Below are positions 11,511-64,000 of a DNA stretch of 64,000 nucleotides, in pieces. The stretch covers positions 1,674,001-1,738,000 of the forward strand of contig CM068769.1 in assembly GCA_035084275.1 (NCBI GenBank), in the 5' to 3' direction. This DNA comes from Hydrolagus colliei. Lineage: Eukaryota. Numbering within the stretch: position 1 is the stretch's first letter; each line of letters starts with the position of its first letter. The position numbers were made by a program, and so were the translations under genes. The notes below the pieces were generated by a model. It was not told the DNA's origin. It searched no databases and saw nothing but the letters and a program-made list of their open reading frames with translations.

Positions 11511-11522
11511 ATTACACTTGGC

Positions 11523-13562: not shown

Positions 13563-13569
13563 CTCAGCA

Positions 13570-13608
13570 TGATTTTGTACAGGCTCCTCTGGGACACGCA
13601 GCACTGTG
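13570..13608 (-). other. RSS of V5: CACAGTG / 23 bp / ACAAAATCA
   Basis: Consensus heptamer 13602-13608; nonamer has 2 mismatches. Confidence 0.93.
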
Positions 13609-13891: not shown

Positions 13892-14013
13892 CTGGGAAAT
13901 ACAAATGAAGAATCTAGGAGAGCAATTTGGGGAAAACAAACACCACCATCGACAAAATTTATGGTTTCGCAGTAAAGCAAAGGTATGATTCTCCCAATAA
14001 ATAGTTTACTTAC

Positions 14014-14071
14014 ATAGCAGTGTTGTCATTGAATTTACAAATATATATAATGGATTGAAATTCGGCTTCAT
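14014..14071 (-). CDS. TRAV: Leader exon of V5
   Basis: MKPNFNPLYIFVNSMTTLL+T, donor T|GTAAGT. Confidence 0.85.
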
Positions 14072-14778: not shown

Positions 14779-17700
14779 AACAACAACAACAACAAATTAC
14801 ACTTATAAAGCGACTTTCACGTCGGGGAGACGTGCCAAGGCGCTGCACAGGAGGCGTGTGATCGGAGCTGGCAGGGGATTGCACGAGGAGGGGTGAAACA
14901 CTTAGGGGAGGTCGAAAAATTCTGGGTGGAACAAATGGAACGGTCGAAGAGGAAAGTCTTCAAACCGGTCTTGAAAGAGGAAACGGAAGAAACGAGACGG
15001 AGAGATTGAGGGATGGAATTCCGTAAGCTGGGAGCGGAAAAACTGAAGGCCCGGCCTCCGATGGTGGGGCGTTTCGGGCGGGGGGCTTGGAGCAGGCCAA
15101 ATCCTGCTGAACGGAGGGTCCGGGTGGGCTTGTTGGAGGAGAGTAGGTTCGTTAATTAGGGCGGGGCAAGGCCATGTAAGGACTTGAAGATGAGGACGAT
15201 GATCTTGAATTTGATCCTCTGGAGGATGGGGAGCCAGTGAATACGTCGAGGGTGGGGGTTATATGGTCGCGAAGGCGGGATAATACACGGGCTGCAGAGT
15301 TTGGGATGACGTGCAGCCTATGAATGGAGGACCTGGGGAGGCCGACGAGGAGAGAGTTTCCGTAGTCCTGCCTACAGGTGATGTATGTGCTCACGAGTAA
15401 TTCGGCAGCGTGGGGGTTAAGATAATTGCGGAGCCTGGCAATATTGCGCAGGTGGAAATAAGCGGTGCCGGTCAAGGCACGGATGTGGGGGAGGAAGGAG
15501 AGTTTTTGGTCGAACGTGATGCCGAGGTTTCTGACTGGCTTTGTGAGGTGGGGAGTACAGCCTTGGAAGTTGAGGCTGGCAGCGGCCGATATGCGGAGGC
15601 GCTGGCTTGAGCCAATCAGGAGGGCCTCGGTCTTGCTCACGTTCAATTGCAGCAAGTCCAGGACTCGATGTCGGACAGACATGCTGTCAGAATATCGATG
15701 GTCTGGGGGTTGAGGGATGAGGCAGACAGGTACAACTGGGTGTCGTCCGCATACATGTGGAAATTTACCCCATGTTTGCGGATGACATCGCCCAGAGGGA
15801 GCGTATAAATGGTGAAAAGGAGGGGGCCGAGGACAGAGGCCTGAGGGACGCCGTGAGAAAATGTGCGGAAGTTTGAGGAAAAGCCATTGGAAGATACAAA
15901 GTGTAAACGGTGCGTCAAATAAAAATGGAACCAGTCAAGGACTATGCCTTGAAGGTTGAGGTGGGAGGAAAGACGTTGGAGGAGGATGGTGTGATCGACT
16001 GTGTCGAACGCAGCAGATATGTCAAGGAGGACGAGGAGGCAAAGGGAGCCCTGGTCACAGGCGGTTAGGATATCATTTGTAACCTTAACTAGGGAAGTTT
16101 CTGTGCTGTGAATAGGGCGGAAACCTGATTGGAGGGGTTCAAGAATTGAGTGAGTTGAAAGGAAAGAGCGGAGCTGGGAGGCAACCACTCTTGCAAGGAC
16201 CTTGGATAAAAACGGGAGGTTGGAGATGGGTCGATAGCTTGATGGTTGCGACGCATCAAGGGTTGGTTTCTTCAGGATACGGGTGATGGTGGCGGTTTGA
16301 AGGGAGCTAGGGACGGTGCCTGAGGAGAGGGAAATGTTGATGATGTCAGAAATGAACGGGTACAAAAAGTGGAGCTGGGTGTGGAGGAGGGGAGTTGGGA
16401 TGTGTTCCAGTGAGCACGTGGTGGGTTTCATGGAGGTGATTATTTTCGTGATTAAAGACGGGGAGTGGGGTTTAAAGTATGAAATGTTTGGTGGGTGTGT
16501 GTTGAAGTAACGGATGGAGGGGCGGAGGTGCAGGAGAGGTGGGTGGAGGAAAACGCGGAGCGGATTTTCTCTATTTTGGACTCGAGGAAGTCCATCATCT
16601 CCTCACAACGTTCGTTTGAGGAGAGGATCTGCAAAGCGAGACGGGGGGGGGGTGGAGGAACTGGTTGGTGGTGGCGAAGAGGATGCGGTGATTGTCCTTC
16701 GCATCCAGGATTATGCTGCAGTAGAAGGCTGATTTGGCGATGGCTAGGGCGGAGCGGTAAAATTTGATGCGTTCCAGCCAGATTTGCCGGTGGACCATGA
16801 GGCCAGATTTGAGCCAGGTGCGTTCACCTGCTCTCACTTGGATTTGAGTGAGCGGAGGTGAGTTGTGTACACGGTGATGATCGGGAGTGGGAGACGGTTC
16901 TGGAGGTGAGGGGGGCCAGGTGTCGAGGGTAGTGGAGAGGGTGTTATGGAGGGCGGTGGTGGCGGAGCAAAAAGAATGCCACTTTGGGAGGAGTTCGGAG
17001 GTTTCGAGGGCAGAGGTGAAAGTTTGAGGGGGAATCTTCTTCCAGTGCCGGCAGAAGATGGTGGTCGGTTTGGAGGTAGAGTAGGGAGGGATAGAGGTGT
17101 TGAAAGAAAGGCAAAAATGGTCTGAAATGGCCTTGTCGGTGATGGTGACGCCAGCGACGTTGAGACCTCGGGTGATCACCAGATCGAGCGGATGGCCGTG
17201 GGTGTGGGTGGCAATGTTAATGTGAAGGGAGAATTTGAAAGACGAAAGTATAGAGGAGAATTCAGAGGAAATGGGGCAGGAGGGAGTGAAATGGAGGTTG
17301 AAGTCGCCAAGAATGATCAGGCGATCAGAGGAGGCACGGAGGGAGGTTAAAAGTGAAGAAACGTCTGAAATGAAAGTGGGGGAGGGTTTGGGGGGGCGGT
17401 AAACCAATAGGATATTGAAGGAATTATGGGAGGAGTGAGAGAGTGTGAGCTGTTCAAAAGAGGGGAAGGAACCGGAGGAGTAGGGCGAGGGTTGACTTTG
17501 AAATAAAGGCAACACCACCGCCACGACGGCTGGGTCGAGGGGCATGGTGGAATGTGCGTGTGGCTTCAACGATGGGGAAAGTGTCGCCTGGGGTGATCCA
17601 AGTCTCCGTCAGGGCCATGATGTCAACGCTCTCATCAAGGATGAGATTGTTGATGGCCAGGGTCTTGTTGCAGACAGAGCGGACATTTTGGAGGCGGATG

Positions 17701-18780
17701 CGGAAAAAACAATTGGCCGAGGGGTGTGAGGGGGGACTGGGATGGTCGGCGGGGAGGGTTGGGATCTGGATAAGGGAGGAGTGGTTGACCCCCCGGGTTT
17801 GTGTCTAGTGGGGATGGCGCTGATGGTGGGGGGCAGGGCATTTGTTGTGGCTGCTGTTGGACAGCCAACGCCGAGTGCCACGGTGAGCCCGATGGAGAAT
17901 TCCAAAACTGGAACAGAGGGAAGCGGTGGGAGGGTCGAGCAGGGACAGTAGGCGAGGACTGCGAAGAGAAAGAAGGGTAGAGAAGGAATAACGGAGAGTG
18001 GGGGTTGGGGGGAGAAACTTGAGGAGGGGGAGGGAAGCTCGGGTCATGGCGGCAGCTATATTGAGCACGCGGGAGACAAGGAGCGAGGGATTAATAGGGC
18101 GTCATCATCCCAAGGGATGTGAGGCCGCGGCGGGGGGCTGCAGAGGCGCTGTGGTCGGGAGCCTGGCCGGGACTGAGGCCGAGACTGGGGCTGTGGGTTT
18201 CAGGGCCAATTGCCGGGGCTGCGTGGGCCCGGGCCATGGGTCGCCGGGTAGGCTGGAGCCGTGACCGGAGCCGCAAGTCTCGGGGCTGTGGGTCTTGGAG
18301 ACGGTCTTGGAACCGGGGCTGCGGGTCACGGAGCCGTTGGTCACGGGGCTGGAGCCGGGGCAGCGGGTCATGGGGCTGTGGCTGGGTCCGGGGCTGTGAA
18401 TCTCGGGGCTGGAGCCAAGGCTGTGGCTTTGGGTCCTGGGGCTGTGGCTGGGGCCGGGGCCGGGGCATCGAGTCCTGGGGCTGTGGCTGGGTCCGGGGAC
18501 GGGGCTGTGGTTCCTGGGGCTGTGGCTGAGGCCGGGGCAGTGGGTCCTGGGGCTGTGGCTGGAGCCGGGGCTGTGGGGCTTGGGGCTGTGAGTCTCGGGG
18601 CTGGAGCCACTTCTGTGGCTGTGGGTCTTGGGGCTGGGGCTGGGGCCAGGGCCGGGGCTGCGGGTCATGGGGCTGTGGGTCCGGTCGAGCAATCTCCGCC
18701 ATATGGAATTCTTAAACGTTTGCTGCAGAGAGGCAACTCTAGACCTGTGTGTCCCTCTCGCCGCCATCTTAAAAATATAC
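14779..18780 (-). mobile_element. Near full-length L2-clade LINE; ORF2 (APE + RT) broken by frameshifts
   Basis: APE motifs LQNVRS..NK, LTETW, RGGGVA, GDFNLH and SDH; RT motifs YRPISNLPFLSK, QSGFR..HSTETSL, LDISAAFDTVDH, GVPQASVLGP and YADDTQ; (TTG)n tail at 14779-14794. Confidence 0.93.
18260..18680. repeat. GC-rich degenerate minisatellite (cagccc/cggccc units) in the L2 5' region
   Basis: Visible periodicity; gives a Pro/Gln-rich ORF at 18091-18702. Confidence 0.85.
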
Positions 18781-18932
18781 NNNNNNNNNNNNNNNNNNNN
18801 NNNNNNNNNNNNNNNNNNNNNNNNNNNNNNNNNNNNNNNNNNNNNNNNNNNNNNNNNNNNNNNNNNNNNNNNNNNNNNNNNNNNNNNNNNNNNNNNNNNN
18901 NNNNNNNNNNNNNNNNNNNNNNNNNNNNNNNN
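18781..18932. other. Assembly gap (152 N)
   Basis: Run of N. Confidence 1.
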
Positions 18933-20086
18933 ACACAAACACACACAGACTGCGAGAGAGAGACACACACACAGACAGACTGGGAGAGAGAGACACACAT
19001 ACACACACACACAGACTGGGAGAGAGACGCACACTCACAGGGAGTGGGAGAGACTGTGGGAAAGAGAGAGTCACACACACACAGAATGGGAGAGAGAGAG
19101 ACATACACATACAGACTGAGGGAGAGAGAGGAGAGAGAGAGACACACACGCAGACTGGCAGAGAGACACACACAGACTGAGAGAGAAAGACACACACACA
19201 TAGAGACTGGGAGAGAGAGACACACGCAGAGACTGGGAGAGAGAGGGTGACACACACACACACACAGAGACTGGGAGAGAGAGAATCACGCACACATGCA
19301 CACACACAGAATGGGAGAGAGAGGCACACACACACAGACTGGGAGAGAGAGAGTGAGACACACACATAGACTGGGAGAGGGACACACACAAAAAAAGTAG
19401 CAGAGAGAGTACCGCACACATACACAGACTGGTAGAGAGAAAGTGGGACACACACATAGACTGCAGGAGAGAGACACAAACACAGATACTGGGAAAGAGA
19501 GACACACACACACGCACACAGAGTGGGAGAGACTGTGGGAGAGAGAGAGAGACACACACACAGACCAGGAGAGAGTCACACACAGAGACTGGGAGAGAGA
19601 GAGTCAGACACACACACACACACGGAATGGGAGAGAGAGACACACATACACACATAGAGACTGGTAGAGAGAGAGAGAGAGACACATACGCACTCACACA
19701 CACAGATTGGGAGAGAGAGACACACACACACACAAACTGAGAGAGAGACACACACACAGAGACTGGCAGAGAGAGACACACACACAGACTGGGAGAGAGA
19801 TACACANNNNNNNNNNNNNNNNNNNNNNNNNNNNNNNNNNNNNNNNNNNNNNNNNNNNNNNNNNNNNNNNNNNNNNNNNNNNNNNNNNNNNNNNNNNNNN
19901 NNNNNNNNNNNNNNNNNNNNNNNNNNNNNNNNNNNNNNNNNNGACTGGGAGAGAGAGACACACACACAGAGACTGGGAGAGACACACACACACACACAGA
20001 CTGGGAATGAGAGACACACACAGACTGTGAGAGACTGGGAGAGAGAGAGACACACACACACAGACTGGGAGAGAGACACACACACA
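18933..20086. repeat. Compound (GA)n(CA)n-GACTGG minisatellite, containing a 136-N gap at 19807-19942
   Basis: Directly visible; explains all the CVCVSLS/ERETHT pseudo-ORFs. Confidence 0.95.
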
Positions 20087-47439: not shown

Positions 47440-49175
47440 ATTTTTCCTTCCGTATCCAAGGTTGGGAATGATTTAGGTCAAGTTCACAGAAAGAGTGGAC
47501 TACCCCCTTGCACTTAAACTCGTGTTCACCAGGGACCTTTGCGTCTCGGATATCAGCATCACTGACGAGGCCATCTGCAACCACCAATTCATCTCCTTCA
47601 ACTCCTCTAAACCTCTCCACTCTACCCCCAAACCTACCATCTTCTACCTCTCGTGGACGGAGATTCCCCACAAAAACATTCTCCACTGTCTTCGAGTCCT
47701 CCGAAATCCTTGAATCTGGCCCACCTCCTGCACTAAACTATCTACCGCACTCACCGTTCTCAACCACACCCTCTACACCACATTCAACACACATGCCCCC
47801 CTCACTTCCCGAACTGCCTCCTGCTCCCGAAACTCACCCTGATTCATCATCCACCGTTCGTCCATCAAGCGCCAGGTAGGGCCGCTGAACGGTCCACCTG
47901 CATATCTGGCTGGACGGCACATCTTCCTATCGCTCTGCCTTATCCTCCGCTTAATTCTCCTTGTACACCAAGATAATGCTGGAGGCGAAGGACAAATCCC
48001 GTCTTCTCTACTCTACCAAAACCATCTGATCTGTCCACCTCGTGTCACCTCGCAGATCCTCTCCTCCAATTCCCGCAAGGAAATCCAGCAAGGAAATGCT
48101 GGATTTCCTCGTGACCAAAATAAAGGCTCTGCGGTCACTGTCCTCCCAACCTCCACCCCTGCCCACCTCCTCCACAACCGGTCTCCTACACATCCCTCAC
48201 TCCACACTTTCGACCGCATCTCCCCATCTTCCGTCATTGACAGGATCTGCTCCATGAAGCTCACCAACTGGTAGATTCCATCCCCACCCCTCTCCTCATC
48301 ACCCAGCTCCATCTTCTAGCTTCTCCGATCACCAACACTATCAAACTGTCCGTCTTGCCTGCGACTGGTCCAACCCACCATCAAAAACGTCAACATCATC
48401 CTTTTCTTAAAAAATACTTCCCTCGGTACATCGATGCGTCGCAGGTATAAAGCTACCGGCCAATCTCCAACCTTCCCGTCCTTTCCAAGGTCCTTCAAAA
48501 AATCGTTGCTGCCACCTCCGCTTTATTCTCACTAAACATTCACCAGTCTAACCCGTCCAATCGGGTTTCCGTGCCTCCCACAGCACGTAAACTGCCCTGG
48601 TCACGGTCACAAACGATATCCTGTCCATTTGAAACCTGATCGCCCTCTGCCTATTCGTCCTCCTCAACCCATCGTGGACTACGCTGTCCTACTCCAAACA
48701 CCTCTCCTCTCTACTCAACCTGCAAGAATCTGTCCTCGAATGGATCCGTTCCTAGCTCTCCCACCATCTTCACTTCGTCTCCTCCTATGGGTTTTCCTCC
48801 AGCCCCCGCACGGTCACATGTAGCGTCCCCCGGGTCACTGTCTTTGGCCTCCTGCTCTTCAGCTTCTAAACTCTCTCCCTCGGAGCCATCTTCCGCAGGT
48901 TTTCGGGCTTTCAGCGTCACTGCTCCTACAATATGCAAGTCCATCCTGACGCCCCTCGGCGTCGCTTCCTCCTTTGTCACCATCAAGGCTGGTATCAATT
49001 CCTTTCTCTTCGACCGCGCCTTCGGCTGCCCTTACTAACTTTCCCACTCTCCCACTCTCCTTCCCCTGCTCCGACCCGCCCCCCTCTCGGTCGGTTCCCG
49101 ACCTGACTGATCATCGCTTTTGGATGTCCTCCCGACGTAACACGCGCCATACAAGTGCATTTTTATTATGGATCG
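47440..49175 (+). mobile_element. Decayed, internally deleted L2
   Basis: APE remnant (D..I.NH), RT remnant tcgggtttccgtgcctcccacagcac, L2 3' tail. Confidence 0.7.
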
Positions 49176-49276
49176 TTGATTGCCTTCTTATCTTTCCCTG
49201 CATCCCTGACCTTTATTTGTTTCTAATAACGTCATTAAAAATATTGAATTTAACAATCAAATATTTTTGTCAATAC

Positions 49277-49396
49277 CTGTGAAAGTTCCGCTCATCCACA
49301 CAGAGATTGCAATGACAACCAGAATTACAAGTAGCCATACAATGAAAACATTGTTGTTTTGGCAACATCTGCAACGTCGAAATCCTTTTTCATTCT
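49277..49396 (-). CDS. Transmembrane exon TM3 (phase 1-1, 120 nt) of the predicted spliced gene
   Basis: tcattgtttttccAG|AG...TTCACAG|GTATTG; encodes NEKGFRRCRCCQNNNVFIVWLLVILVVIAISVWMSGTFT. Confidence 0.7.
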
Positions 49397-49569
49397 CTGG
49401 AAAAACAATGATTTAAAAATGAAAGCTTATAGACAGGCTGGATCAACTGCATCAATGTCAATCATGATGAAGAATAATTTATTGTTTCATGTTACCGTTT
49501 TTCAATAGTTAGAATAGAGAATGTTACGACTGCAACATTACATTTGCAAAGCGGCTTCATTTTCTCACA

Positions 49570-50700
49570 TCGGTAGGGGGGAAACTTCTAGAGACTATAA
49601 TCAGGGACAAGATAGATCTTCACTTAGAAATGTATAGGTTAATGCTAAAGGCAAAAACATATCTGACGAATCTGATAGAATTTTCCGTGAGATAACCAAA
49701 TGGGTGGAAGAGGGTGTTGCAGTTTATGTATTTTATATGGACTTTCAAAGGACATTTGTCAAAGTGCCATATGAATGGCATGTGAAGCAATTAGCTGCCC
49801 GAGGCATTAAATGGACAGTGGCAGCATGGATTCATAACTGGCTCGGAGACAACAAGCATAGTGTTGTGGTGAACGACTGTTTTTCTGACTGTAAGTACAT
49901 GTTCATTGTCGTCGCTCGGGGATCGGTATTGGCACCAATCTTGACCAATACCAAGATCTGTGCTTGGGTATACGGAGTACAATTTCCAAGTTTGCAGATA
50001 ATGTAAAGTTAGTAAAAAATTTAAGAGTGAGGAGGATTTTAGCAATCTGCAAGAAGATATAGACCGAATGGTAAACTGAGCAAATGAAGCCCAGATGAAG
50101 ATGAATTATTTCCAGCTGTAGTTTACTGTAGAGAAATGTAAATTGATGCATTTTGGTGTGATAAATGAGAGGAGTAAATATAGGCTAGATAGTACAACGA
50201 ATGAACAGAGAGACCCGTAGATTTGTGCAGATAAATAGATGAAGGTGGCTCTTAAAAAAAGCATACGGGATACTAGGCATTATAACTAGTGGCATATAGT
50301 ACAAAAGTCAGAAATATTAAACTTTGGATAGGCTTCAGCTGGATTAGGCTACTGTGTACAATTCTAGTGACCACACTATAGGAACGATGTTATGGCATTG
50401 GAAAGGGTGCAGAGAACATTTACTAGGATGGTAACAGGAATGAGGAACTTCAGTTATGAGGAAAGGATAGCGAGGCAAGGTTTATTCTCATTGGAAAAGA
50501 GAAGAATGCGAGGATAACTAATAGAAGTGTTTAAGATCATGAGTGGATTCGACAGAGTAGATAGAGAACAAATTTCCACTGGTGGGATTATCAGTGACTC
50601 GTTCTCACAGATTTAATATAGGTTAAAAATCATGCAGAGGGGAGGAGAAATATTTTCACTCAGCGCGTTGTTCGAATCTGGAATGCATTGCGTGAAAAGC
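49570..50700 (+). mobile_element. Decayed CR1 RT to 3' fragment
   Basis: AVYVFYMDFQRTFVKVP; WIHNWL; ctggaatgcattgc. Confidence 0.8.
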
Positions 50701-51880
50701 GCTATAAAAGTTCAATTTGGTAGTCGTTTCTATTTTACTGCTCCACTGGGACTTCATTCTTGACGTCGCTTCTCTCAATATTATCAGAAAAACTTCCTCA
50801 CATTAGCTAAACTATCCTAATCCTATTTTCTGCTGACCTCTGAGCACCTCTTTATCTCATATGCATTTAGTGGCAAGTTTGCAAACACGGCATTTTGTAA
50901 AGGACGTCTTTAGCTTGTCATTCAGCGATAGTAATGGAGTCTCTCTACACTATTCATTTACACATTTATCTGGGTGCTTTTATCAGTGATATGGTCAACA
51001 AAGCCGAAAACGTCGTGTATGTGTTTCTCCTTTGCTGCCTGGATTATTCTACGCAGAGCTTGTCGGTGGCACCAGCTGCTGTTTTCAACAAAGTCAGCTC
51101 ATTTTGCCCTGAAGAACCCAACTACATACAAGCTTACCCGGAACCCAGTTCTAGCAAGGATCCAGTGACACTCTAACAACGAACAGACCAATTTCAATAC
51201 CTTGTTTTATAGATCAAATTACTTTACTTACTGGCATCAGTCTACCACTCCGACAGTCTCGCACCTCAATACGCCATCGGGCCACTCCACTCAGTTGGCA
51301 TCGGCCTGATAATTGTCCCCGGCACCCTTTACTGCACATTTGGAGATTGCACCGACAGCTATTAAATCATGCAACAAAGTTGCATTTAAATGGCGCCATT
51401 TACGCCTCGTCTACATTCCTACAGGAGGTTCAGGGACCGTATCTCCCTCATTCTCACTTGACTCAATTTGCTTCCCATCACATGAAGGATATAGTTAATG
51501 ATCTTGGTCTTCATGTTCAAAACACTCCTTGGCCCTGTTCGCCCCAAACTCTGAAACCACTTACCAATCTACCCACTCACTCCGCTCAGGGGCATTGTTA
51601 CTTCTTCATGTCCCCCGCCTCGCTCGCCCACCATTGGCAGGCAAGCCTTCAGCCACTCTGCATTCACCCCAACCCCCACAACAGATGAAACGCCGCCTTC
51701 ATTCTCTCCGCCTCGCCACATCCGTAGACTGCTTGACACGCCACCTTAACGCCCTCTTATTCGACTGTGCTTTCGATCCACTTACTGCCCTCCACCAACC
51801 ACACTCTGCGGTCCCTAGCCCTAATTGTGGTCCGAAGTTCGCTGAGGCCAGTGTCTTAGGGTGACTAGATTACTTTAAAT

Positions 51881-52130
51881 GATAGAATCATAGAATCGTA
51901 AAATCATAGAAACATAGAAACATAGAATCATAGAATCATAGAATCATAGAATCATAGAATCATAGAATCATAGAATCATAGAATCATAGAAACATAGAAT
52001 CATAGAATCATAGAATCATAGAACCATAGAATCATAAAACCATTGAAGCATACACTAATAGAATCATAGAATCATAGAATCATAGAATCATAGAATCATA
52101 GAATCAAAGTATCATAGATTCACAGAATCA
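51881..52130. repeat. Expanded (CATAGAAT)n array, the tail of a minus-strand CR1 (52130-52790)
   Basis: About 30 eight-bp units followed by CR1 3'UTR/RT remnants. Confidence 0.9.
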
Positions 52131-53089
52131 TTTAATCCCACTCCCCATCTCTCTCTACATAAATGCGCTAACCCGTTCTCCCCAAATAAATGTTTAACTT
52201 TCTTTGAACACTTGTCATCGAATCGGCTTCCACAACCTTTTAAGGTAGTTCAGGTAGGACGTGAACCCAAGTCCTGTTCATTAATATAAATTAGAAAGGC
52301 CAGTCTTCCCGATATCGACCCATGGAGGACGACACTGTACATTTCCCTCCGGTCAGAAATAGAGACGTTCACCCCCCCCTCTCTGCTTTATGTCTCCCAG
52401 CCAGCTCTGGACCCATGCTGCCAATATCCCTTTAACACCGTGGTGTTTTATTGTACTTATATGCGTTTTATGTGGAACTTTGTGAAATATCTTTTGAAAG
52501 TCCATATAAATTACATCACATGCACTATCCTCCCTTCTTCCAAAGTAAAGATCTATCCTGTCCATAATTATCGTCTCTAGAAGGTTTCACACTGCTGATA
52601 CTACACTGACTGCCCTGTAGCTTCCTGGTTTGTCATTCTGCTCCTTTTTGTGCATGGGAGTAACGTTAGTAAATTTCTAGTCCTCTGGCACTAACACTGT
52701 GCCCAAGGAACAATGCAACATTGCGGCCAGAGCCTCTGCTATTTGATCCCGTACTTCGCCTAGTAACCTAGGTTGCATCCCTTATATACCAATATAAGGG
52801 TGAGAGTGCGTGAGAGGGAGGAAGGAGAGACGGGGGAGAAGGATCCCAAAATACATCAACACCAACACGACTACCCACAGCCATCAGATCGCAAACAACT
52901 CTGACTTCCCCCAAGTCACTAAACTTCCTCAATTCCCTAAACTCAACATCTTACACCTCCAAACTTTTCTCAGCTCCAAACATTTCTCACTTCCTCCACA
53001 GCACATACTACACGCTCACCAATTAACCACCACAAGGCGCACACCCGCCAAGTCCTCAACTGTCAGCAGAACGCACCACCACCACAACA

Positions 53090-53510
53090 ACAAAAAATAA
53101 TGTAGCGCCTTTCATTTCGGGAGGACATACCAAGGCACTAAACAGATAGGGCGAGACCAGAGCGAGGGAGGGGGGGATGGATTGGTGCAAGGGCGGAGGG
53201 AAGCAGCGTAGGAAATGGGGGAAGATTAGGTGGGCAGTAAAAGGCACGATCGAGCAGGCGATTCTTGAGATAGGACTTGAATGGGGAAAGTGGAAGCGAG
53301 GCGAAGGCATAGGTGGATCGATTTCCAGGGTTTTGGGGGAATCACAGCCACCGATGATAGGGCATTTCTGGCGGTGGACGTGGAGCGGGCTGATAGGGAG
53401 ACTATCTGAACGCAGGGGACAGGCAGACTGATAGGGAGACAGCCGGTCGGATAGATAGTGGGGAAAGGCGGTGAATGACCGTGAAGGTGAGGACGATGAT
53501 ATTGAACTTA
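53090..53510 (-). mobile_element. L2 3' fragment
   Basis: aacaacaaaaaataatgtagcgcctttca tail. Confidence 0.7.
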
Positions 53511-53976
53511 CCCCACCTTGCCTTCACCTATCACCACCCCACCACTTGCCCACAGCCCTCACGTCCTATGTAGCGCTCACCTTCCACATATCACTCACAT
53601 TCAACAAATTCCTCCAATCTCTCACAGCCTTCATCTCATACACAACAGCGTCCATGCTCATTTGCGTTATCCCCTTTCATCAGTCAGTACCCCACAGCTC
53701 TCACTTCGGCACAGCAACCAAATATCCAAACAACTGCACCCACATCGCTCGCACTACTTCCTTCACCATGCCACTTCCCTCACCCTGACAGAGCAGTCAC
53801 ACACCCCGCCACGCACACCACTCAAACAAACCACAAACCTCACCTCAATGTAGCTCCCAACTCCCAACAGCATTCACCGATGCACAGTACACAGTTCCCC
53901 ACCATACAGCTCCCCAAATTAAAGACGTGCACTTTCATTGCCTCCGCACATCCCTTAAATTTCACATAGTCCTCAC

Positions 53977-54039
53977 CCCTACTTCCGTGCACTTCCAGTG
54001 TTTGCATCACGTGCTGCGGTGAGATGCTCCTCAATTCCT
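53977..54039 (-). CDS. Predicted exon E7 (63 nt, phase 1-1), truncated repeat exon
   Basis: tttgctatAG|AG...AGTAGGG|GTGAGG; encodes ELRSISPQHVMQTLEVHGSR. Confidence 0.55.
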
Positions 54040-54683
54040 CTATAGCAAATTGAAATAAAATAAAGGGAAGGTTAATGTATCTTTCATTCTCCATATTCAT
54101 TGAGCTTTACTATTAATAATAATAACCCTTTCACATCCAAGAGAGTTTCGCCACGATATAAAAGCAACCGCACACAAATCGATCAGCCATCACTTACACC
54201 ACAGACCTCAAACACTACTATAAGACCACGCACTCCCCCCACAAACCCAGACCGTTATCCCCCACATCAAGAACCCTCAAAACCTAAAGCCTTCAACAAC
54301 CGCATATCCCTGATTTCCTCACTGCCCTCAGCATACATCCGCAGTCAGCACCCATCTCTCTCAAATCGCCACATTCATCACATCCCACATGTTAGGTAGT
54401 CCTAACCCTGGTGGGTTAGGACTACCTAACCCATCAGGTAACACACCTCACCACATCACTCATATCACACAACCATCACAGTCACTGCACAGATTATATC
54501 CCCACATCCCTCACATGCGCAACAGTTTTTTCCCCACACAGAGCTCACCAACTCCATACCCGTAACACATCGCACCCCTCATCCCCAAACAGCGATCACC
54601 ACAATAGCATCCCTTATCTCGCATTGCCCTCATCGCTACCTCAGTGATAAGCGAAAAGCCACAATCACCTCCGCAGGCCTCAC

Positions 54684-54785
54684 CTGTGACCTTCGTCTCC
54701 ATTGCTTCAAATTTTTGGTGCAAAAATTGTATAAGTGATTGTTCTTGCTGTTCCAGTTTTTCCGCCATGATGCTCCGACATTCCT
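54684..54785 (-). CDS. Predicted exon E6 (102 nt, phase 1-1), heptad-like
   Basis: tttgctacAG|AG...GTCACAG|GTGAGG; encodes ECRSIMAEKLEQQEQSLIQFLHQKFEAMETKVT. Confidence 0.72.
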
Positions 54786-55459
54786 CTGTAGCAAATTGCA
54801 GGTAACATAAACGTAAGGTCAATGTATCTTTCATTCTACAAACACATTGAGCTTTACTAATAATAATAGTATCCCTTTCACTTCTAAGAGATTTTCAGAA
54901 CGATGTACAAACAACCGCACTCACATCGCTCCCCTCCCACTCAGCTACCATTTCCAACTCAGCCTTCAACCACAGTTGTAAGACCACGCACTCCCCCTCC
55001 ACACCCAACCCAATCCGTAATCCCACACTTCAAGAACCCTCAAAACTAAAACCCTCAACAACCACTTAGCCATCCTTTCCCTCACTGCCCTCAGCATATA
55101 TCCGCAGTCACCAACTATCTCTCTCACATTCTTCACTAATAATTATAATAACCGTTTCATTTGATATAGTACTTTTCACGTCGTCTAGACGCCACAGAGC
55201 GCTACACAGCTTTGTCCAAAAACAAATACACCCATATCGCTCACTTCCTACTGAGCCATTACAGCTCTATTTATCTCCACATCCCCCAAATGCGCAACAG
55301 CCCACTCCCCGACACATAGCTCACCAACCCCATACCTCTAGTATCTCACACCCGTCATCCCCACACAGCGATCACTATCACAACATCCCTTATACATCAC
55401 AACCCTCACCTCCACCTCAGTCATCAATCGGAAGCCGTCACCACCCTCGCAGGACTCAC

Positions 55460-55573
55460 CTGTGATCTGCGTCTTCATTGTTTCAAATTCCTGGTGCACA
55501 CATTTTCTAAATGATTGTTCTTGCTGTGCCAGGTTTTGCGCCACATTATCCGGCGAGATGCTCCACACTTCCT
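55460..55573 (-). CDS. Predicted exon E5 (114 nt, phase 1-1), heptad-like
   Basis: tgttcaatAG|AG...ATCACAG|GTGAGT; encodes EVWSISPDNVAQNLAQQEQSFRKCVHQEFETMKTQIT. Confidence 0.72.
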
Positions 55574-57348
55574 CTATTGAACATTGCAGGCAAAGCAAAG
55601 GGAACGTTAGTCTACATTTCATTCTCCAAACATATTGGGCTGTAATAATACTGATAATAATAACCCTTTCATTTGACATATTGCTCTTCACGTCTTATAG
55701 ATGTCTCAGAGTGCTTCACAGCTATGTCCAAACACCTATACTCTCATCGCTCATCTCCCACTCAGCCACCACTGCCGCCGTCAGCCTCAACCGCAACTAT
55801 CAGACCACACACTCAACCCCCCAATCTACCCCAAAAGCCAATTACCCCAGGCTGTTACACTACACAGAGCCTGGAACACACCAATAATCCTCTGCACCTA
55901 CAGGGTGAGGGTGTTGGGGATGGTCGAGGTAGGGTGAAGGGGGAGGGGAGTGGGAGTTAGTGGGGCAGCCGATGGCGAGGTTGAAGTGAAAGTTCTTGAG
56001 ACCTGCATTGAAGGCGGAAAGGAAGGAAGGAAGGCGGATTGAGTTCCCCAATGTGGGAAGAGAGAAGCGGTGGACGGCCTAAACCAGCAGTTGAGGCCTA
56101 TGAGAGAGTTGTTTTCTGTGGTTTATCAACATTTGGAATAATGTCTAAAGCAGTGGCCAGCCCACAACAGGAGTTTGGTGGATCCCTCTTATCAGATTAA
56201 TCTGATTCTGTCTCTCAACTCGTGGTCTGAAAATGTGACTAGATTTTCCGCTCATTATTGGACTGACGCTCCATAGGGAAACAGTATTTTTCTATTCATG
56301 TTCAGAAGAATCATGGTTAATGCAATGCTGTATCACAACCGGGGCATAATACATAGTGCAATGGTTGTTGCGGTGCGATCCATCTAGCTCCAGATTTGTG
56401 AAACTTGCCGCCATCACTCTTCATCCTCCAACTTGACTCTGATTTGCTATCAAATTTGACAGTCGGGGATTGCTGCCAAAGTGGGGAGGGCTGCATGTTA
56501 CGTTGTCTGCGCTTTCAGTCAGTACGCTATCGGTAAAATCACATTTCATTTTGGTATCCGTTCGCCTGACTGGCCAAAAAGCTAATCCGACCTCAAACGA
56601 ATTGAGGTTTCCTGACCCCCGAAACCTCACTGTCTCCATCACTGCCTCCGTCTGATTATGTGGGCTTTGCTTCACTTAGTTAAAATTCTGCATCTCAATA
56701 TATCATTGCTCTTCCGAAAAGGATGTGCATCCCCCTATTAAACCAATACTTTATTAGCAGTGAATCCTCAATATCAGTTCAGCGATAGTGTGAATCCCAT
56801 CAGCAATGAGGCACTCCAAAATGTCTGAAAATCGGCTGTCTTTTACCAATGTCTTGACTGATTTTTCGAAAGGTCTATGTGTGCTCTACAGAGTGGTGTC
56901 GTATTGCTGGGATTTTTCTGTCTTATTGGGAATCACTGGTTTGCAGAAATCATACAATTGGGATTATTGTTTAATTATCTCACATAACGAGATATCAAAT
57001 TTAAATACCGTCTCCTCAGTGAATACAGAATTGTTGTTGTTGTAACCAAGGCCTCCAGACCTCAGCACCGTGATCGCTTCAATCGTTGAAATTGCAGGCA
57101 ATGACTTTCCTGGCATTGGATAGTGGTTCGTTTTATCGCAGGTAACGCTATGTGATCCCTGCTTTCCTATGGTGCATTTAGACATGCATTTTTGGTGCCA
57201 TAGATAGCCAATCAACTCTCACCTTAAAACCGTCGTCTTCTCTGCGAAATCTCTTCATCAGCCGACCACCCTTCACCCAGAGCATTAGTACGTCCTGGTT
57301 ATGTACAATGAGCAATAAAACTTCAATTTGTTGTTACCATTTACATAC

Positions 57349-57450
57349 CTGCATTAGAGTTCTCGGTCGGAGTCATCACCGGTTGTAGGCTACTCTGCAG
57401 GAACTTATTTTTTATTGTCTCCAAAGAGGTGGTCACGAACGTCGCCAAAA
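57349..57450 (-). CDS. Predicted exon E4 (102 nt, phase 1-1)
   Basis: gaatgcttctAG|TT...AATGCAG|GTATGT; encodes LATFVTTSLETIKNKFLQSSLQPVMTPTENSNA. Confidence 0.6.
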
Positions 57451-57569
57451 CTAGAAGCATTCAGATATAGTATCAATTATAGCACAGAACATGATTCATT
57501 CAATTGTCCCTGTTGTGCTGCTCACTCTCCAATGGATCTATCACGATTGAATAGTCATACTAATATTGA

Positions 57570-57860
57570 TATTGCGCTTTTCGCGTCTTAGTAACGTCTC
57601 AAATCAATTCACATAACATAGTATCAAGCGAATTGACTGTATATTTGGTGGCGAAACTCTGCTGCCAATTACGCACAGTAGTGTCGCTACACACAGCCGT
57701 GGATTGAAATGACCAATGTCTATTTGTTTTCTATGGATGTATTAGTATTAGTAGTGTGTGTGGAGTAAGGAAACTTGTCCAAGTTTTAGCACTGATTTGG
57801 CTGGATTCGAATAATGCATTCACGCTATTAATGCGAGTGCTCTAACCACTGTGGTACTGG
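57570..57860 (-). mobile_element. tRNA-derived SINE
   Basis: agtggttagagcactcgc head, attcgaatcc B-box, L2-type tail. Confidence 0.7.
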
Positions 57861-58539
57861 ATTTCCACAAGTTTAGTAATAATCCTTTCATTTTGATATA
57901 GCGCTCTTCACATCTTATCGACGTCCAGACGCGCTGCATATTATATATTGCAGACTGGATTGACTGTATATTGGTTGGTAAAATATTTGAAATTAGATTC
58001 TGGGTTCATCCTTAGCAACCCATTGTAAAATACATTGTAAATATATAAGACAAGACTGAACATAGTCTCAACCGTCAGTAACAGCAGTTTAATGGAACAA
58101 TGTGGAAGCTTTCTGTAATCGTGTTCCTGTGTTAGGAATATATTCATGAATTATTGAGATTTGCAAGACTAGATTCTTTTTTGACATATTGATATTTCAT
58201 CAGCTTGTCCACAAGATCTGTCCTGCAACCCCGTAACTTGTCCTAGATTTGTTAGGTACCGGATGGCATAAAACGTATCGACATTCGCACTTCGAAAACA
58301 TGTCTAGCAACAGGATAAGGTGAGCTGCAACTGTGTAAGCAATGAATGAATTGCATTATGTCCATGTTTACTAATAAAGCATCAAAGCCTATGTTTACTG
58401 GCAGCAGACCAATATGTTCATTCCACCGCATCGCTGCAGGAGTCAGAGGAATTATTTATCGTGGTTCTTTGTTCAGAATCCTGCTGACACTGGGGTTGAG
58501 AGAAACCCCAGTGCTGTAGACTGGCTGGTTTTGTTACAC

Positions 58540-58629
58540 CTTTGCCATTGTAGTCAATAAAAGTTTGGAGGCAATCTGGAATAGCCTTATCTTTTGCGAC
58601 AGGTTTGGTTTGAATTAACCTCAGTGATT
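58540..58629 (-). CDS. Predicted exon E3 (90 nt, phase 1-1), weak donor
   Basis: ggttttacccAG|AA...GGCAAAG|GTGTAA; encodes SLRLIQTKPVAKDKAIPDCLQTFIDYNGK. Confidence 0.4.
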
Positions 58630-59420
58630 CTGGGTAAAACCACACAAACCTTTTGCATAAATTCAGATGGCAGAGAGTATTCCCTACTCTCCCATTGCAT
58701 ATTCTGCCATAATTATGGATGCTGATATCTAAATCATTGTCAGTCTTCTTACTACTGGTGGCAACGAATAGCGAGAGTTCAACCAATACCCAGACATTAG
58801 GTAAAATAATGTGTGCAACGTGAAAGGAACTAGTTTGTAAATTCCTACAGAGTCTACTCTAGGGGTGGAAGACTTTAGCTGTGAGATCACGGCCTTTCAT
58901 TGCAAAGTCCACTAGCTCATATGTTAGAGTACCAGCCTTGCAAGCATGAGATGTCGGCTAAACCGAAGCAAGGTGCAAACTTACGTAAGTCTCATTACGC
59001 CACAAGCATAACAAAAGCAGCATACTGTGTTACAATTAATACATCAGTGTTTGCGGGACACTGCTGTGTGCAAATAACTGCCGTACTTCGCCCACAAATT
59101 AAGTGAGATATTTAGGAGACATCAAAAGCGCAATATCACATGCAAGAATTATTATCATTTGATATCCCCGTGACTGTTTGTCAACTGTTCATCACACATT
59201 TCCAATTTATAGTGGGCATCACAAATCCATTTTGCAAAATGATATCGCTAGCTAAATGTGCCCATCAATCGTTATCTGCGGTGTAGTTGAGGACTTTTGT
59301 GAAAGCGAGAAATACATACCGATTCTCCACAAAAAGTGCTGTCAGTATCCAACATTGCGTCACCAGAACATTGGTTCACTTGAGGAGCATGTTTATAATA
59401 TTCATAGTTGATAACCTCAC

Positions 59421-59663
59421 CTTTACCAGAAACTGCACAATTGGGTTGGATTTCTATTTCCTGTGACGTCCTGTAAATATAATCCACAAATTTCCTGGCC
59501 ATGCTAGCAAAGTTAGGATTTAGTTGACTTTCCGATTGCAGTTCCATGTCGTTCGTCGCCTTTGCGATTATTGGGCTCTCAAACATAAAGGCCTTCAATT
59601 TGTAGAAGTGCTTCCTGATGCGGTTTCTTGGCAGGTTAAACTCGACAGCTCTCTTGCTCACAC
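59421..59663 (-). CDS. Predicted exon E2 (243 nt, phase 1-1)
   Basis: attctttcgtccctAG|GT...GGTAAAG|GTGAGG; encodes VSKRAVEFNLPRNRIRKHFYKLKAF...SMARKFVDYIYRTSQE...VSGK. Confidence 0.7.
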
Positions 59664-61216
59664 CTAGGGACGAAAGAATATTCCACATAGATGTAATCGA
59701 TTGGCTGTCAGGAACAGCATGGTTCAATGTGCATGAGAAATCTGGACATGTTCAAGTATCACCAAACCAACAAATACCGAAGGATGGATGGACGGTAGTC
59801 CAGGGTACTTATGGAGACAATGCATGGCATTGGTGCAACTCGAACAGAAAGAAAAAGACTCAAAATATTACATTGTTCACCAAGCAGCGGTCGTTACTCC
59901 CGAAGGGCGACACTACTAAATCTGACAACGATAGACCATTTAGTATGATCTCAAAGTAAGAAAATAGAGTATTATCAGAAAGTAACAACATTGTGTCCAA
60001 ACAAAACATTATTCATTGACGGCCAACTGAGATTCAGACATAGACCAAGTATCAAACGTTTGTTGAGGAGTTAATAGCCAAAATGTTTCGTCGGCAGCCG
60101 TATGATTTCGTACATTCAGACTTTTAAGGGGCTTTGAACAGAGCTCCTAATGAAATATTCTTCTATGAACAATTGTCACTGAGTAGTAAGACATGGACCT
60201 GGATTTATAGGGAAATCAGTCCAAATATTAAAAGTTACTAATCAAGATGTGGATCTGCATGTAATGTATATTTGAAGGCATGGTTTCCAACAGAATACAT
60301 ATGTTTCAGTTTTCACCTAGTTGAGTTAGTTAATTCATCGCTGTTGATATCAATTCACGGTGCAGTATATTCTGCGATGCGCTTTCAGACTTGCAGAATA
60401 CGTGAAAAGCGCTATACCAAATGAAAAGTTTATTATTGTTATCATGATCAATAATTAGAGACGTTTGTAAATTTTAAAGAATTGTCTAATCGTTACAAAG
60501 GGCTTGAAAATCTAAAACCAGAGCAAAACGTTAGATGAAGCAATAATACTTCCTTGATCAAGTGCAGTTTCATTACACGAAGTCAGGAAATTTAGGGAAT
60601 CTTTTCTTTTCTCGTAGTGTAATGAATGGATTCGTGGATGATTTACACCCTGATATTGGACTCATTAATAAATGCTTTGTTCGTTTCAAAGGTGGACGCT
60701 ACGGTGTCGAATCGAGAAATATGGTATCAGATGTGAATCACTGTTGTGATCCAATGAATCCCGACCACACCTTTCCGCTTGAATATTAAACTGGGGAGAC
60801 CAATAGCTCAGCGGTTGGAGTTCTCACATTGCTAGTGAGTCATCAAGGTTCAGTTCTTTTTCAGGTTAAATTCCAGGCAGCAAGAAACCTTCAACAAGTT
60901 TCTTTTATCCATACTCTAATAAGAATCCTCGACCAATAGTATAATTTCAAATGCACAATTGTTTCTGTGACATTGCTATGAGAAATTTGGCTAGGTTTCG
61001 CCTACAAATGGAATCAATTGACATTGAAGTCTATTTTATGAGGTGCTTGTAGACACCCAAAATACGTGCTATGTCAAGTGCAATACTTGCTGTTATTATT
61101 AACAACATGATAGTTTCAAAAACTTGGAGCCCACGAATACACAATACTCCAACATTGGCCAAGAAAGCACAAGTGCTACAGTTTCCCTTTCCCAATGTAA
61201 CGGATGAGCTTGTTAC

Positions 61217-61389
61217 CTTTCTTCAAAGTCAGTGCATTCTCCAAATATTCATCCACGGTCACTTGTTGTCCATTAATGAACAGCCCAGAATTGAAATCCT
61301 GAAGAGCCCAGATGAAGAAACGTGCAATGATGGAGGGATCCCCACTGCACAACTTGTCAATCTTAGATTTAATAAGATCTGTGTTTTCG
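61217..61389 (-). CDS. Predicted exon E1 (173 nt, phase 2-1)
   Basis: tctttacttccttcaccatatctcAG|C...AAGAAAG|GTAACA; encodes ENTDLIKSKIDKLCSGDPSIIARFFIWALQDFNSGLFINGQQVTVDEYLENALTLKK. Confidence 0.68.
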
Positions 61390-63029
61390 CTGAGATATGG
61401 TGAAGGAAGTAAAGAATTCAAAGGCTTGCAGCTAATTCAGGATTAACAGGAAATGTAATATATCAATGCATTTTGTTGTTGTACCTGTGTCACTGCGAGA
61501 TATTTTCATTACATAACGTAGCAAATTAGTTGAGTTACGCAACACTTAAAAAAAATATTAACGGTAACTATCGTTGCATTTACACTCATTTTACATTGTT
61601 TTCATGCATGAACCTTAGACACACTAGTCTCGGAACCATATAGTGGTGGGTTGAAGACCACAAACGGACTCGGAAGCATTATGATTATGCCAATACGTAA
61701 GGTCCAATCTGCATGTTCAGGTGGACAAAATAGATCAGCTAGAACTATTTGAAAAGAGAATGGGTATTCTACTTTTGTCCTGGCCAATAATATTCCTCCA
61801 ACTAAAATTATGTATCATTTCATGTATATTTCATGTGTATTTTATAACATTGTTTTGTGGACCTAGCTGCAACACATTTACCACAAAATATAGTCAATCG
61901 AAAATGTGCGTGGAGTCCTGGAGCTGAGTGGTTAGAGCATTGGCCTTGCAACCGAGACACTTGAGTTCGAATCCAAGCATATTGAAGTCTTCGGAAAGTT
62001 TCCTTTCTCCACAAGCCTAATAGTAATCTCTCAAGCTAAAACAATAATACGTTAGTTACGCAATCCACGAATTGGTGGAAATTGATGGAGGCAATTGGCC
62101 GCATATACATATCCCACAAATATACAATCCATTCAGTTTATAGTATACTTTGGAAATCGCTTTGGCACATCCAGAATATACGTAAAGCTCTGTATCATAT
62201 TCCAAAAAATATCAAAGGCAAAAATAAACCGCCTATGCAGGATATCCTACAACCACAGACATGATATGGCAATATATCAAACGCAAGCATTATGATTGGT
62301 AACTCAAGTTAACTCACTCTTCATGTACCCTAGTTTACACTGGTTATTAAGCAGATTGGAAAGATAGGGAGGTTCGAGCACATGATGTAGTCGGGAAATA
62401 TTGAAATTGATTCAATACTTTTTGAACCGTGTACTCTGGTACGTATTCGAAAGGTGGGGGTAAGGAATTTTGTATCGGAATTCGAGAGAGCAGCAAAAAG
62501 GCAAAGTCGAACCAGGAAGTGACAAGGCTTAGTCTGTTGTTGCGGCCGCTTCGGATGTGATTTACGAATTGTCAAACTTTAAATATGGCACTAGCCAGGG
62601 AACCGATATGGGGTTGTAAGAAACCTATGTATGGAACAAGGTGCCAAACTTCCACACAGTGAGTCGGATGGAGCCTTCATCGATGAAAATATGTTCAAAC
62701 GTGCATTCGTTGAAGGAAGCCAATAAATATGGCTTCCATTTTACTGCCATTCACCTGCGCAAAGTTTACACTCATTCAATAGTTGATGTCCCCAAATCAG
62801 CTAACAAGTCACCAGCCCACAGGCAGTCATCGCTTTGGAAGTAGATTTTTGGTGCAATACACAGTTAAATTGAAGTTGATCCCCAAGGCTGCAGATGGCA
62901 TCCCCAAGAGGGAACATGTATGTGTAGAAAAGACCGGGACCAGGGTTTGCACATTGTGGAACACTGTAGATGGCCGAGCAGAGGGGGGATGCACCATGAG
63001 CAGTTAGTGAAGTAGGACCAGATCCAAGA

Positions 63030-64000
63030 GATTGCAACAGCCATAACATTTCACTTGTAGAGCGCTATTTAAGTCGAGAGGACGACCCAATCCGCTGAAC
63101 AGACAGGAAAGGGCCTGGGAGAGGGAAAACTGTGGGGTGGAGGGGAGAGGCCAGAGAGAGGTAGGAGTCGAGGGAGAGTTGGGATGGCAGCAAAGGCACG
63201 GTCAAATAGGAGGGTCTTGAAATCGGCATTCAAGTAGGAGAGTCAAAGTGACACTGGGATGCAGTTCCAGAGTGTGGAATTAGAGAGGCTGAATGCCCAT
63301 CCGCTGCTGGTAGGTCGTGTCAGGTGGTAGATACGGAGCATACCGGAGCCCGATGAACAGAGGTGGTGGGGAATTTTATAGTGGGCAGCAGGTCGTTGTG
63401 ATGGATGGATAGACAAAGCTGGGAAGATAGGAGTGATTTTGCTGCGGAGATTGGTACGGATGAAAACACGAGCTACAGGGTTCTGGAGATGTTGACCTTC
63501 TGACGGGAAGACCCAGGATTGCCGACGAGGAGGGAATTTCCGTAGTCGAGCCTTGATTCGATGATTTCGTGGACCAGGCTTTCGGCTGCCTGTGGGTGAG
63601 GCAGTGGCAGAGGCTGGCAATGTTTCGAAGTGGGTGGAAGGAAGCTATTGCTCAAGGCATGGATGTGGGGGTGGAAGCACATTTAAGGGTCGAACAAGAC
63701 GTCCATTTTCCTGAGTCGCTTAAAGGGCGGTGAGTGCCCCTCTGGATGCTAATGGCGTCAGCGACTGAGCTGCAGAGGCGCTGATCCGAGCAGCTCAGGA
63801 GGGCTTCAGTGTTGCGGAGACACAACTGGACAATTTTGTTTTTTGTCCAGGGTTCAATGTTAGACAGGCAGTGAGGACGTTAGTGAGAACGTGGAGTTGA
63901 GGGTGGAAGCAAAAAGATAGAGTTGGGTGTGATCCGCATGCATTTCAAAATTTACCTCATGTCTGCGAATGATGTCACCGAGAGGATCAAACAGAGTGTG
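63030..64000 (-). mobile_element. L2 3' fragment running off the window
   Basis: IIESRLDYGNSLL; LQNPVARV; NSTLWNCIP; L2 tail near 63060. Confidence 0.8.

Follow-up and report, generated by a model that had tools for sequence, protein, structure and literature searches.

Guanylate-binding proteins (GBPs) are interferon-type large GTPases of the dynamin superfamily and central effectors of cell-autonomous immunity, which in mammals are targeted to membranes through a CaaX prenyl switch. Cartilaginous fishes are the oldest jawed vertebrates with both interferon and adaptive immunity, and to our knowledge their GBPs have been little described. Reviews of the vertebrate GBPs describe a CaaX anchor or none (PMC9005921), plant GBPL2 and the atlastins are transmembrane (TM) members of the wider GBP family (PMC12034427), and our literature search found no paper on tail-anchored vertebrate GBPs. 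Here we describe a gene in a stretch of 64,000 nucleotides (nt) from Hydrolagus colliei (GenBank assembly GCA_035084275.1, contig CM068769.1, positions 1,674,001 to 1,738,000 of the forward strand; hereafter the window, with position 1 its first letter). It consists of eight exon-like segments on the minus strand between 49277 and 61389, which a sequence-only reading had taken for an unannotated, possibly lineage-specific immune membrane protein. We find that it belongs to the GBP family, an assignment that we regard as near certain; that it is a highly divergent paralogue giving an eight-exon, TM-anchored product is the explanation that we favour, with guarded confidence. The exons and the features that accompany them, all on the minus strand, are as follows.

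Exon 1, 61217-61389: 173 nt, entered in phase 2 and left in phase 1; internal exon of a GBP gene, 38.8 bits against the GBP profile.
Exon 2, 59421-59663: 243 nt, phase 1-1; end of the GTPase domain, 64.7 bits against the GBP profile; donor 11.0 bits.
Exon 3, 58540-58629: 90 nt; carries IPxC, probably at the beginning of helix alpha7; donor 4.1 bits.
Exon 4, 57349-57450: 102 nt; putative continuation of alpha7; donor 9.9 bits.
Exon 5, 55460-55573: 114 nt; lies in tandem repeat unit 1; donor CAG/GTGAGT, 12.6 bits.
Exon 6, 54684-54785: 102 nt; lies in repeat unit 2; donor 11.1 bits.
Exon 7, 53977-54039: 63 nt; truncated third copy of the repeat; donor 7.8 bits.
Exon 8, 49257-49396 including the stop codon (120 nt as far as the donor proposed at 49277, 4.4 bits): basic, Cys-rich stretch and TM segment.
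Tandem genomic triplication, 53750-56100: units of about 750-790 bp that hold exons 5-7 and their introns.
Two AATAAA polyadenylation signals, 49212-49217 and 49162-49167: consensus match only.

Comparison with described systems

The vertebrate GBPs (GBP1-7 and the GBP1/2-like proteins of sharks and chimaeras, such as Callorhinchus milii XP_007882584 and Heptranchias perlo XP_067831538) share with the window gene the PF02263 domain, the motifs FF..W..(R/Q)DF, DEYLE, NLPR..I..F and FVDYIY, and the positions and phases of their introns. Common to both are also the IPxC at the start of alpha7 followed by a PTE motif, and a polybasic stretch beside the membrane anchor, and window exons 5 and 6 resemble the tandemly repeated C-terminal helical unit of the Callorhinchus GBP. 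The window gene differs from them in its identity of 30-42% (54% locally), the longest branch in the tree, QD in its G4 motif, a 3-residue deletion and a split 281-nt exon, in lacking the GBP_C domain, with helices alpha8-alpha12 missing or unrecognisable, and in ending on a predicted TM tail anchor, not on a CaaX box or an amphipathic tail.

The atlastins and plant GBPL2 resemble the window model in joining a GBP-type GTPase (G) domain to a short helical bundle and a TM membrane insertion, and as in these proteins GTP-dependent G-domain dimerisation of membrane-anchored molecules would be expected of it (PMC12034427, PMC8565484). However, atlastins carry a two-TM hairpin and an amphipathic tail, whereas the window model has one TM segment, seven residues from the C-terminus, and its sequence is nearer to GBPs, no atlastin chain having been matched in a PDB search of the joined peptide at E<=1. 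Membership of the atlastin family was rejected on these two grounds, and the likeness would be convergent, not orthologous. Similar in plan is P0133, an uncharacterised GBP-like database protein of 467 residues which, like the window model, has a GBP G domain, a helical region, a single C-terminal TM segment and a basic end; unlike it, P0133 still has a GBP helical domain that can be recognised, contains a Gly/Ala-rich linker, and shows no specific similarity to exons 5-8. A few TM-tailed GBP-like proteins of this kind are among the database matches of the window protein and may serve as a precedent for the predicted architecture.

Gene structure

We read the minus strand from 49100 to 62500 and spliced the eight segments by script. 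AG stands immediately before each of them and GT immediately after, and the joined 1007 nt hold no stop in 335 codons of one frame, while the other two frames have about 20 stops each. Exons 2-8 are all phase 1-1 with lengths divisible by 3, and every junction of the model is phase-compatible. The coordinates, dinucleotides and phases of the sequence-only reading were thus reproduced, and the eight-exon observation is confirmed as real, its support beyond chance being uneven between exons. The donors of exons 2, 4, 5 and 6 reach 9.9-12.6 bits, when just 2% of GT sites in the region score 8 bits or more. A stringent scan for exon-like candidates with strong donors found seven on the minus strand of 49-62 kb (about 13 kb), one on the plus strand of the same interval and nine in the other roughly 115 kb of both strands, a sevenfold enrichment on the strand of the gene, which indicates that exons 2, 4, 5 and 6 are more than a reader's choice.

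Family identity

The joined peptide matched the Pfam GBP large-GTPase domain PF02263 with E=2.8e-19 and 69.7 bits (cutoff 21.1), over profile positions 158-260 of 264, which is the C-terminal half of the domain. Thirteen distinct solved chains of GBP5, GBP1 and GBP2 were matched in the PDB (E 5e-21 to 1e-18), in alignments that begin at about GBP residue 145-150 and run unbroken across the junction of exons 1 and 2. In a word-indexed search of 5.8 billion proteins all matches were mammalian GBPs, at 29-40% identity, and 1.84 billion representatives, scanned exhaustively with HMMER, yielded 233 matches with a best E of 2e-25; the 150 of the 233 that were listed are all GBP-type, at 24-54% identity. 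The relatives that we looked up by name include shark GBPs, from Cetorhinus, Heptranchias and Stegostoma, and the top local identity (54% over 64 residues) was to a GBP of Callorhinchus milii. When exons 1 and 2 were scored against the GBP profile, none of 3000 composition-preserving shuffles scored as high as either. As judged by these profile and structure alignments, exons 1-2 encode the C-terminal half of a GBP large-GTPase domain. The protein that had gone unrecognised is thus of a known family, not of a new one, and what is new is the divergent variant; the segment that had been read as a helical N-terminus is the later half of its GTPase domain. As the sequence-only reading had itself allowed for, a clear match to a known family takes away the novelty and confirms the gene, and the part of the earlier claim that spoke of an immune protein holds, GBPs being an immune gene family.

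Comparison of exon boundaries led to the same assignment. As reference we took the GBP1-like locus of Heptranchias, whose 12 rebuilt coding exons translate exactly to the annotated protein and measure, from the fourth on, 229, 128, 110, 188, 246, 281, 213, 103 and 332 nt. The entry and exit phases of exon 1 are those of the 188-nt exon. The junction of exons 1 and 2 (LKK/GVSK) falls at the same residue and phase 1 as the shark LKS/GLSK, which places exon 2 opposite the 246-nt exon, and that of exons 2 and 3 (SGK/E) agrees in residue and phase with the shark NGK/K. The intron positions and phases of exons 1-2 are, on this comparison, inherited from an ancestral GBP gene, and the junctions shared with the shark gene independently confirm exons 1 and 2, and exon 3 at its start. 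The claim of an unannotated-looking multi-exon gene on the minus strand is borne out.

The 5' end of the gene was sought in 61390-64000, where all open reading frame (ORF) pieces were read and tblastn was run with 9 and then with 159 GBPs, and no GBP N-terminus was found. Since nothing N-terminal is present there, and one of the gene's own introns already spans 4.6 kb, the gene runs off the window; the first ~145 residues, which in GBPs hold the P-loop, the switches and DxxG/DTEG, must lie beyond its end at 64000, and the window holds the 3' two-thirds of the gene. The first exons that had been suggested near 62317 and 61741 were rejected: ATGAAGA/GT at 62317 leaves in phase 1 when exon 1 needs phase 2, and the two candidates are out of phase or without similarity.

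The reference gene itself, on the Heptranchias locus L001 (3001-6281), opens on three exons of 168 nt, all phase 0-0. The last two of these are tandem copies, 80% identical, that place a ...GFNRRVPAATR... repeat N-terminal to the G domain.

The G-domain half

Exon 1 encodes ENTDLIK...FFIWALQDF...DEYLENALTLKK and includes the G4 'RD' motif, here reading ALQD; exon 2 encodes GVSKRAVEFNLPRNRIRKHF...FVDYIYRT...AVSGK. In the G-domain part, 20 of the 24 columns conserved in at least 80% of 119 homologues are retained. The G4 motif, (T/A)(L/V)RD in its usual form, confers guanine specificity; its Asp, kept in the window gene, is present in 119 of 119 homologues, and the replacement of its Arg by Gln is shared by just 2 of them. 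Exons 1-2 hold 138 intact codons despite amino-acid divergence of about 60%. So many intact codons at ~40% identity cannot come from long neutral drift, and over the greater part of its past this copy evolved under selection. In a maximum-likelihood tree the sequence grouped weakly with short-contig JGI/IMG and Logan sequences (support 0.65-0.74), probably through long-branch attraction.

Exons downstream of the G domain

The acceptor of exon 3 lies at the ancestral position, and its 30 residues equal the shark sequence KLINLAITYMDALRSGQIPCVESAFVTLAQ in length and place IPDC in register with the shark IPC; on alignment with the shark gene, exon 3 probably corresponds to codons 1-30 of the ancestral 281-nt exon. 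Exon 4 ends in PVMTPTENSNA, which resembles the GBP 'LPTET' (the shark counterpart being FPIETIEEL), and the Cys and the PTE motif are spaced 37 residues apart here and 34 in shark and human GBPs. Together the two exons look like pieces of that single ancestral exon. A tblastn search of the whole window with 159 GBPs turned up no further GBP_C-like exon.

Exons 5-7 lie in a tandem genomic duplication, for which the repeat finder reported families D2-D9 with spacings of 747-821 bp. Exons 5 and 6 differ by a 12-nt in-frame indel and keep acceptor, donor and frame across about 25% divergence. The description of these segments as tandem heptad exons did not survive, as the heptad periodicity is not significant (the best a/d hydrophobic fraction of 0.44-0.60 is reached by 30-65% of shuffles), and we see no sign of purifying selection on exons 5-7 in the comparison of their copies. 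A model of the peptide by AlphaFold2 (AF2) placed a helix at 210-279, over the repeated exons, with a predicted local distance difference test (pLDDT) score of up to 82. Exon 7 is the weakest exon and may be skipped, in which case the frame is kept.

On the source of the repeated exons, phmmer --max with exons 5-7 found nothing below E=0.2, and a profile of GBP helix alpha8 gave no significant score against them. A profile of alpha13, the last helix of GBPs, which included the Callorhinchus repeat rows was matched by exons 5 and 6 better than by all but 2 and 35 of 5000 shuffles respectively, these rows having been picked after the similarity was noticed; without them, 80 and 845 of 5000 shuffles did as well. 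BLASTP without composition correction also reaches the C-terminal helices of GBPs, which are themselves rich in E, Q and K. That exons 5 and 6 derive from the last GBP helix is thus suggestive only, the resemblance being composition-sensitive. An origin from a dispersed repeat was rejected, as only a SINE-like piece (SINE, short interspersed nuclear element) of about 60 nt of the unit recurs in the window.

In the Callorhinchus milii GBP P0193 (XP_007882584), residues ~440-680 form at least three tandem C-terminal helix repeats of about 82 residues (...HEAMAGKLQEQKRSLRQEFQEKSAAMQQEI...), so that repeat expansion of a GBP tail is not unique to the window gene. The SINE-like tail motif GTGAAGAGCGCTATATCAAA occurs in the window at 2205, 55160, 55672, 57892 and 60402 (five copies with at most 3 mismatches, expected 0.01), and copies sit in several introns of the GBP-like gene, including about 100 nt upstream of repeated exons.

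Exon 8 has a good acceptor in phase 1 (TTGTTTTTCCAG) and encodes ENEKGF-RRCRCC-QNNN, the TM core VFIVWLLVILVVIAISVWMSGTF and TGIDKNI, followed by the stop TGA at 49259-49257. Within the exon, RRCRCC occupies 49362-49379 and the TM core 49293-49349. The 19-residue Kyte-Doolittle hydropathy of the core, 3.08, is the second highest in all six frames of the window, where only two segments reach 3.0, and the 15 sliding windows above 1.6 in the joined protein all fall in this one segment, a single TM; AF2 models a helix over it with pLDDT 74-78. The proposed donor at 49277 is weak (4.4 bits), an in-frame stop follows 6 codons on, and the AATAAA signals lie 40 and 90 nt past that stop. The simplest reading of these three features is a terminal exon and a tail-anchored protein, so that exon 8 is probably the terminal coding exon and the onward splicing at 49277 that had been assumed most likely does not take place. 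Within the resulting model of 341 residues the TM core is residues 312-330, the chain stays hydrophobic to about 334 and ends some seven residues later, and the N-terminal flank is rich in K and R, as in a tail-anchored protein, given that exon 8 is spliced as proposed. No CaaX prenylation box is present, the C-terminus reading ...SGTFTGIDKNI after the TM segment. By the positive-inside rule the basic, Cys-rich side would be cytosolic, which agrees with a cytosolic GTPase domain, and the cysteines of RRCRCC are candidates for palmitoylation. The earlier picture of a last exon with a basic, Cys-rich stretch, a TM helix and cytoplasmic-N, tail-anchored topology thus stands.

The 4.6-kb intron before this exon contains a microsatellite of about 32 copies of the 8-nt AATCATAG (51878-52131), which is adjoined by a degenerate reverse-transcriptase fragment at 52356-52586 (minus strand).

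Proposed product

On the explanation that we favour, the G domain would be followed by a short remnant of the helical domain (alpha7, exons 3-4), one helix-encoding exon with its intron would have been tandemly duplicated (exons 5-6 and the truncated 7), and the terminal exon would supply a juxtamembrane motif rich in basic residues and Cys, with one TM helix seven residues from the C-terminus. The whole product would be a tail-anchored GTPase of about 465-490 residues, inserted into the membrane post-translationally with its GTPase domain on the cytosolic side, in which the TM and polybasic stretch take the place of the polybasic-CaaX prenyl anchor of GBP1, GBP2 and GBP5. Such a protein would reside in the membrane permanently and may act through GTP-dependent, head-to-head G-domain dimerisation, as GBPs and atlastins do, in cell-autonomous defence or membrane tethering. 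That this eight-exon, TM-anchored product is really made and functional we put, going by the sequence, at roughly even odds. A bolder form of the proposal, which we advance as tentative and rather doubtful, is that in a cartilaginous-fish lineage a GBP was pared down to a dynamin-like GTPase inserted permanently into the membrane, consisting of a G domain, a short stalk that arose by tandem duplication of an exon, a palmitoylatable polybasic motif and a tail-anchor TM, an independent, atlastin-like solution replacing prenylation, fast-evolving under immune selection beside a T-cell receptor (TCR) alpha/delta V array.

Alternative explanations

Several observations weigh against a functional, eight-exon GBP, and most of them bear also on the alternative that has survived best, namely that the locus is a decaying GBP paralogue, a unitary or recently dead pseudogene, in which exons 1-2 are real remnants constrained until recently, the helical exons were disrupted by insertions and lost, and exons 3-8 are chained open stretches of a G-rich, stop-poor strand. 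We consider this quite possible, though less likely than not. The single 281-nt exon of the shark is here split by introns of 1.1 and 1.8 kb that contain SINE-like pieces; exons 3 and 4, scored alone against the GBP profile, are not significant (p~0.12 and p~0.05); and exons 3 and 8 have weak donors, of 4.1 and 4.4 bits. The helical domain is missing, in that no match to PF02841 (GBP_C, helices alpha7-alpha13) was obtained at E<=1 and, of six columns of that domain that are highly conserved, four have been lost. In the G-domain half, the change of RD to QD is, set against the homologues, a derived or damaged feature, and FFPxFxW has a 3-residue deletion before the W. The same may be said of the exon 1 acceptor, which lies 12 nt downstream of the ancestral position: since 61390-61401 still reads PYLS (shark HYIT), the ancestral acceptor has been lost and another taken up in frame, itself a derived or damaged feature on this alignment.

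The repeated exons and the database searches point the same way. Units 1 and 2 are as similar in their introns (72-79%) as in their exons (71-83%), and dN/dS, the ratio of nonsynonymous to synonymous change, is about 2.9 between exons 5 and 6, from just 19 differences. Unit 3 is homologous to the others for its first ~50 nt only and its ancestral donor is destroyed, and the open frames of exons 5 and 6 run well past the exons, in ORFs of 118-127 residues on the G-rich strand. No match below 1e-30 was found among the 1.84 billion representatives scanned with HMMER, which means no close relative there, identity reaching 30-38% at best, and no orthologue or transcript-derived protein among 15 billion sequences. 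The gene has the longest terminal branch of the tree, 1.85 against a median of 0.36, about fivefold. The 5' half with the catalytic motifs is outside the window, and the AF2 model, from an alignment of 8 sequences, is poor overall (pLDDT 46, predicted TM-score (pTM) 0.22), as the peptide contains just half of a G domain.

On the other side, 138 intact codons and 20 of 24 core residues at ~40% identity are difficult to reconcile with long decay, as neutral drift would have brought stops, so that the death of the gene, if any, would be recent. The donors of exons 4, 5 and 6 are very strong, both repeat copies keep frame and splice sites through an in-frame indel, every junction is phase-compatible, and a near-ideal TM helix with polybasic flank, stop and polyadenylation signals stands at the right place, strand and phase.

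A functional GBP-like gene with another 3' end is, in our view, rather improbable. Exon 3, exon 7 or both might be skipped, unit 3 might use a donor at 53844, the TM exon might be an alternative last exon or part of another transcript, and the main product would be a short, soluble GBP. Symmetrical phase 1-1 exons can indeed be skipped freely, a 4.6-kb gap rich in transposable elements precedes exon 8, an alternative donor is present at 55410, and the joined peptide of exons 3 and 4 also aligns to the same profile segment in an alternative register. The donor at 53844 (at least 9 bits) is stronger than that of exon 7 and would create a 196-nt exon, 54039-53844. However, this exon would leave in phase 2, out of phase with exon 8, which in that frame stops early without a TM segment; the tblastn search of the window offers no GBP_C-like exon as a substitute, and no candidate but exon 8 combines a coherent protein feature with a stop and polyadenylation signals.

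The view of the sequence-only reading, that of a previously unknown, lineage-specific membrane protein family, could appeal to the C-terminal 140 residues, which have no significant database match, and has next to no likelihood, being refuted by the PF02263 and PDB matches and the junctions shared with shark GBPs, which make the N-terminal 140 visible residues unambiguously GBP with ancestral GBP intron positions.

Neighbouring features of the window

The 3' end of the gene faces an array of V-like ORFs across about 35 kb of DNA rich in SINEs and long interspersed nuclear elements (LINEs). Those found are as follows.

Five V-like ORFs, 1460-1843, 3364-3642, 8555-9013, 11507-11878 and 13548-13913, minus strand: pattern FWYRQ...DSAVYYCA.

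Four of the five fall into two alternating families, ...LFWYR.YP...DSAVYYCA and ...FQWYKQ.GNGS...D(S/T)A.YFCA, and one carries a CACAGTG-23-ACAAAAA recombination signal at about 8708. The best matches of one V-like ORF were immunoglobulin-like V domains of Callorhinchus milii (62-71% identity), and PDB matches did not distinguish the V domains of TCRs from those of antibodies. The earlier placement of the gene beside a TCR V array agrees with the five ORFs and the 23-spacer signal, and by their sequence motifs a TCR-alpha/delta-like V-array context is plausible.

An Rfam tRNA match at 13489-13562 (minus strand, 34.3 bits, E=0.002) adjoins a V segment at its 3' end; ARAGORN called no tRNA genes in the window, and the match is probably the tRNA-derived head of a SINE. 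LINE-type reverse-transcriptase/endonuclease ORFs occupy 6192-8579 and 15155-17805 (for example 393 residues at 7907-6729, and 337 and 319 residues at 17608-15646). Their C-terminal motif (...RRLRGDLIEVYKIM...) occurs also inside the annotated zebra-shark GBP P0017, at residues ~554-607, and to judge from this shared motif that gene model may include a transposon-derived exon. The block 14000-20000 has a G+C content of 0.50-0.54, strong GC skew and low-complexity ORFs rich in Pro and Gln or built on TG dinucleotides, and contains two assembly gaps (N runs) at 18781-18932 and 19807-19942.

Implications

The analysis corrects a flag of novelty to membership of a known family, with a gene model that is truncated by the window. 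If the locus is a pseudogene, it would be a routine outcome of birth-and-death evolution, as is typical of GBP clusters. If the TM-anchored product is true, it would be a natural minimal construct for the contributions of the stalk and of the lipid switch, and a constitutively inserted GBP without most of its stalk would mean that the family explored atlastin-like architectures in vertebrates.

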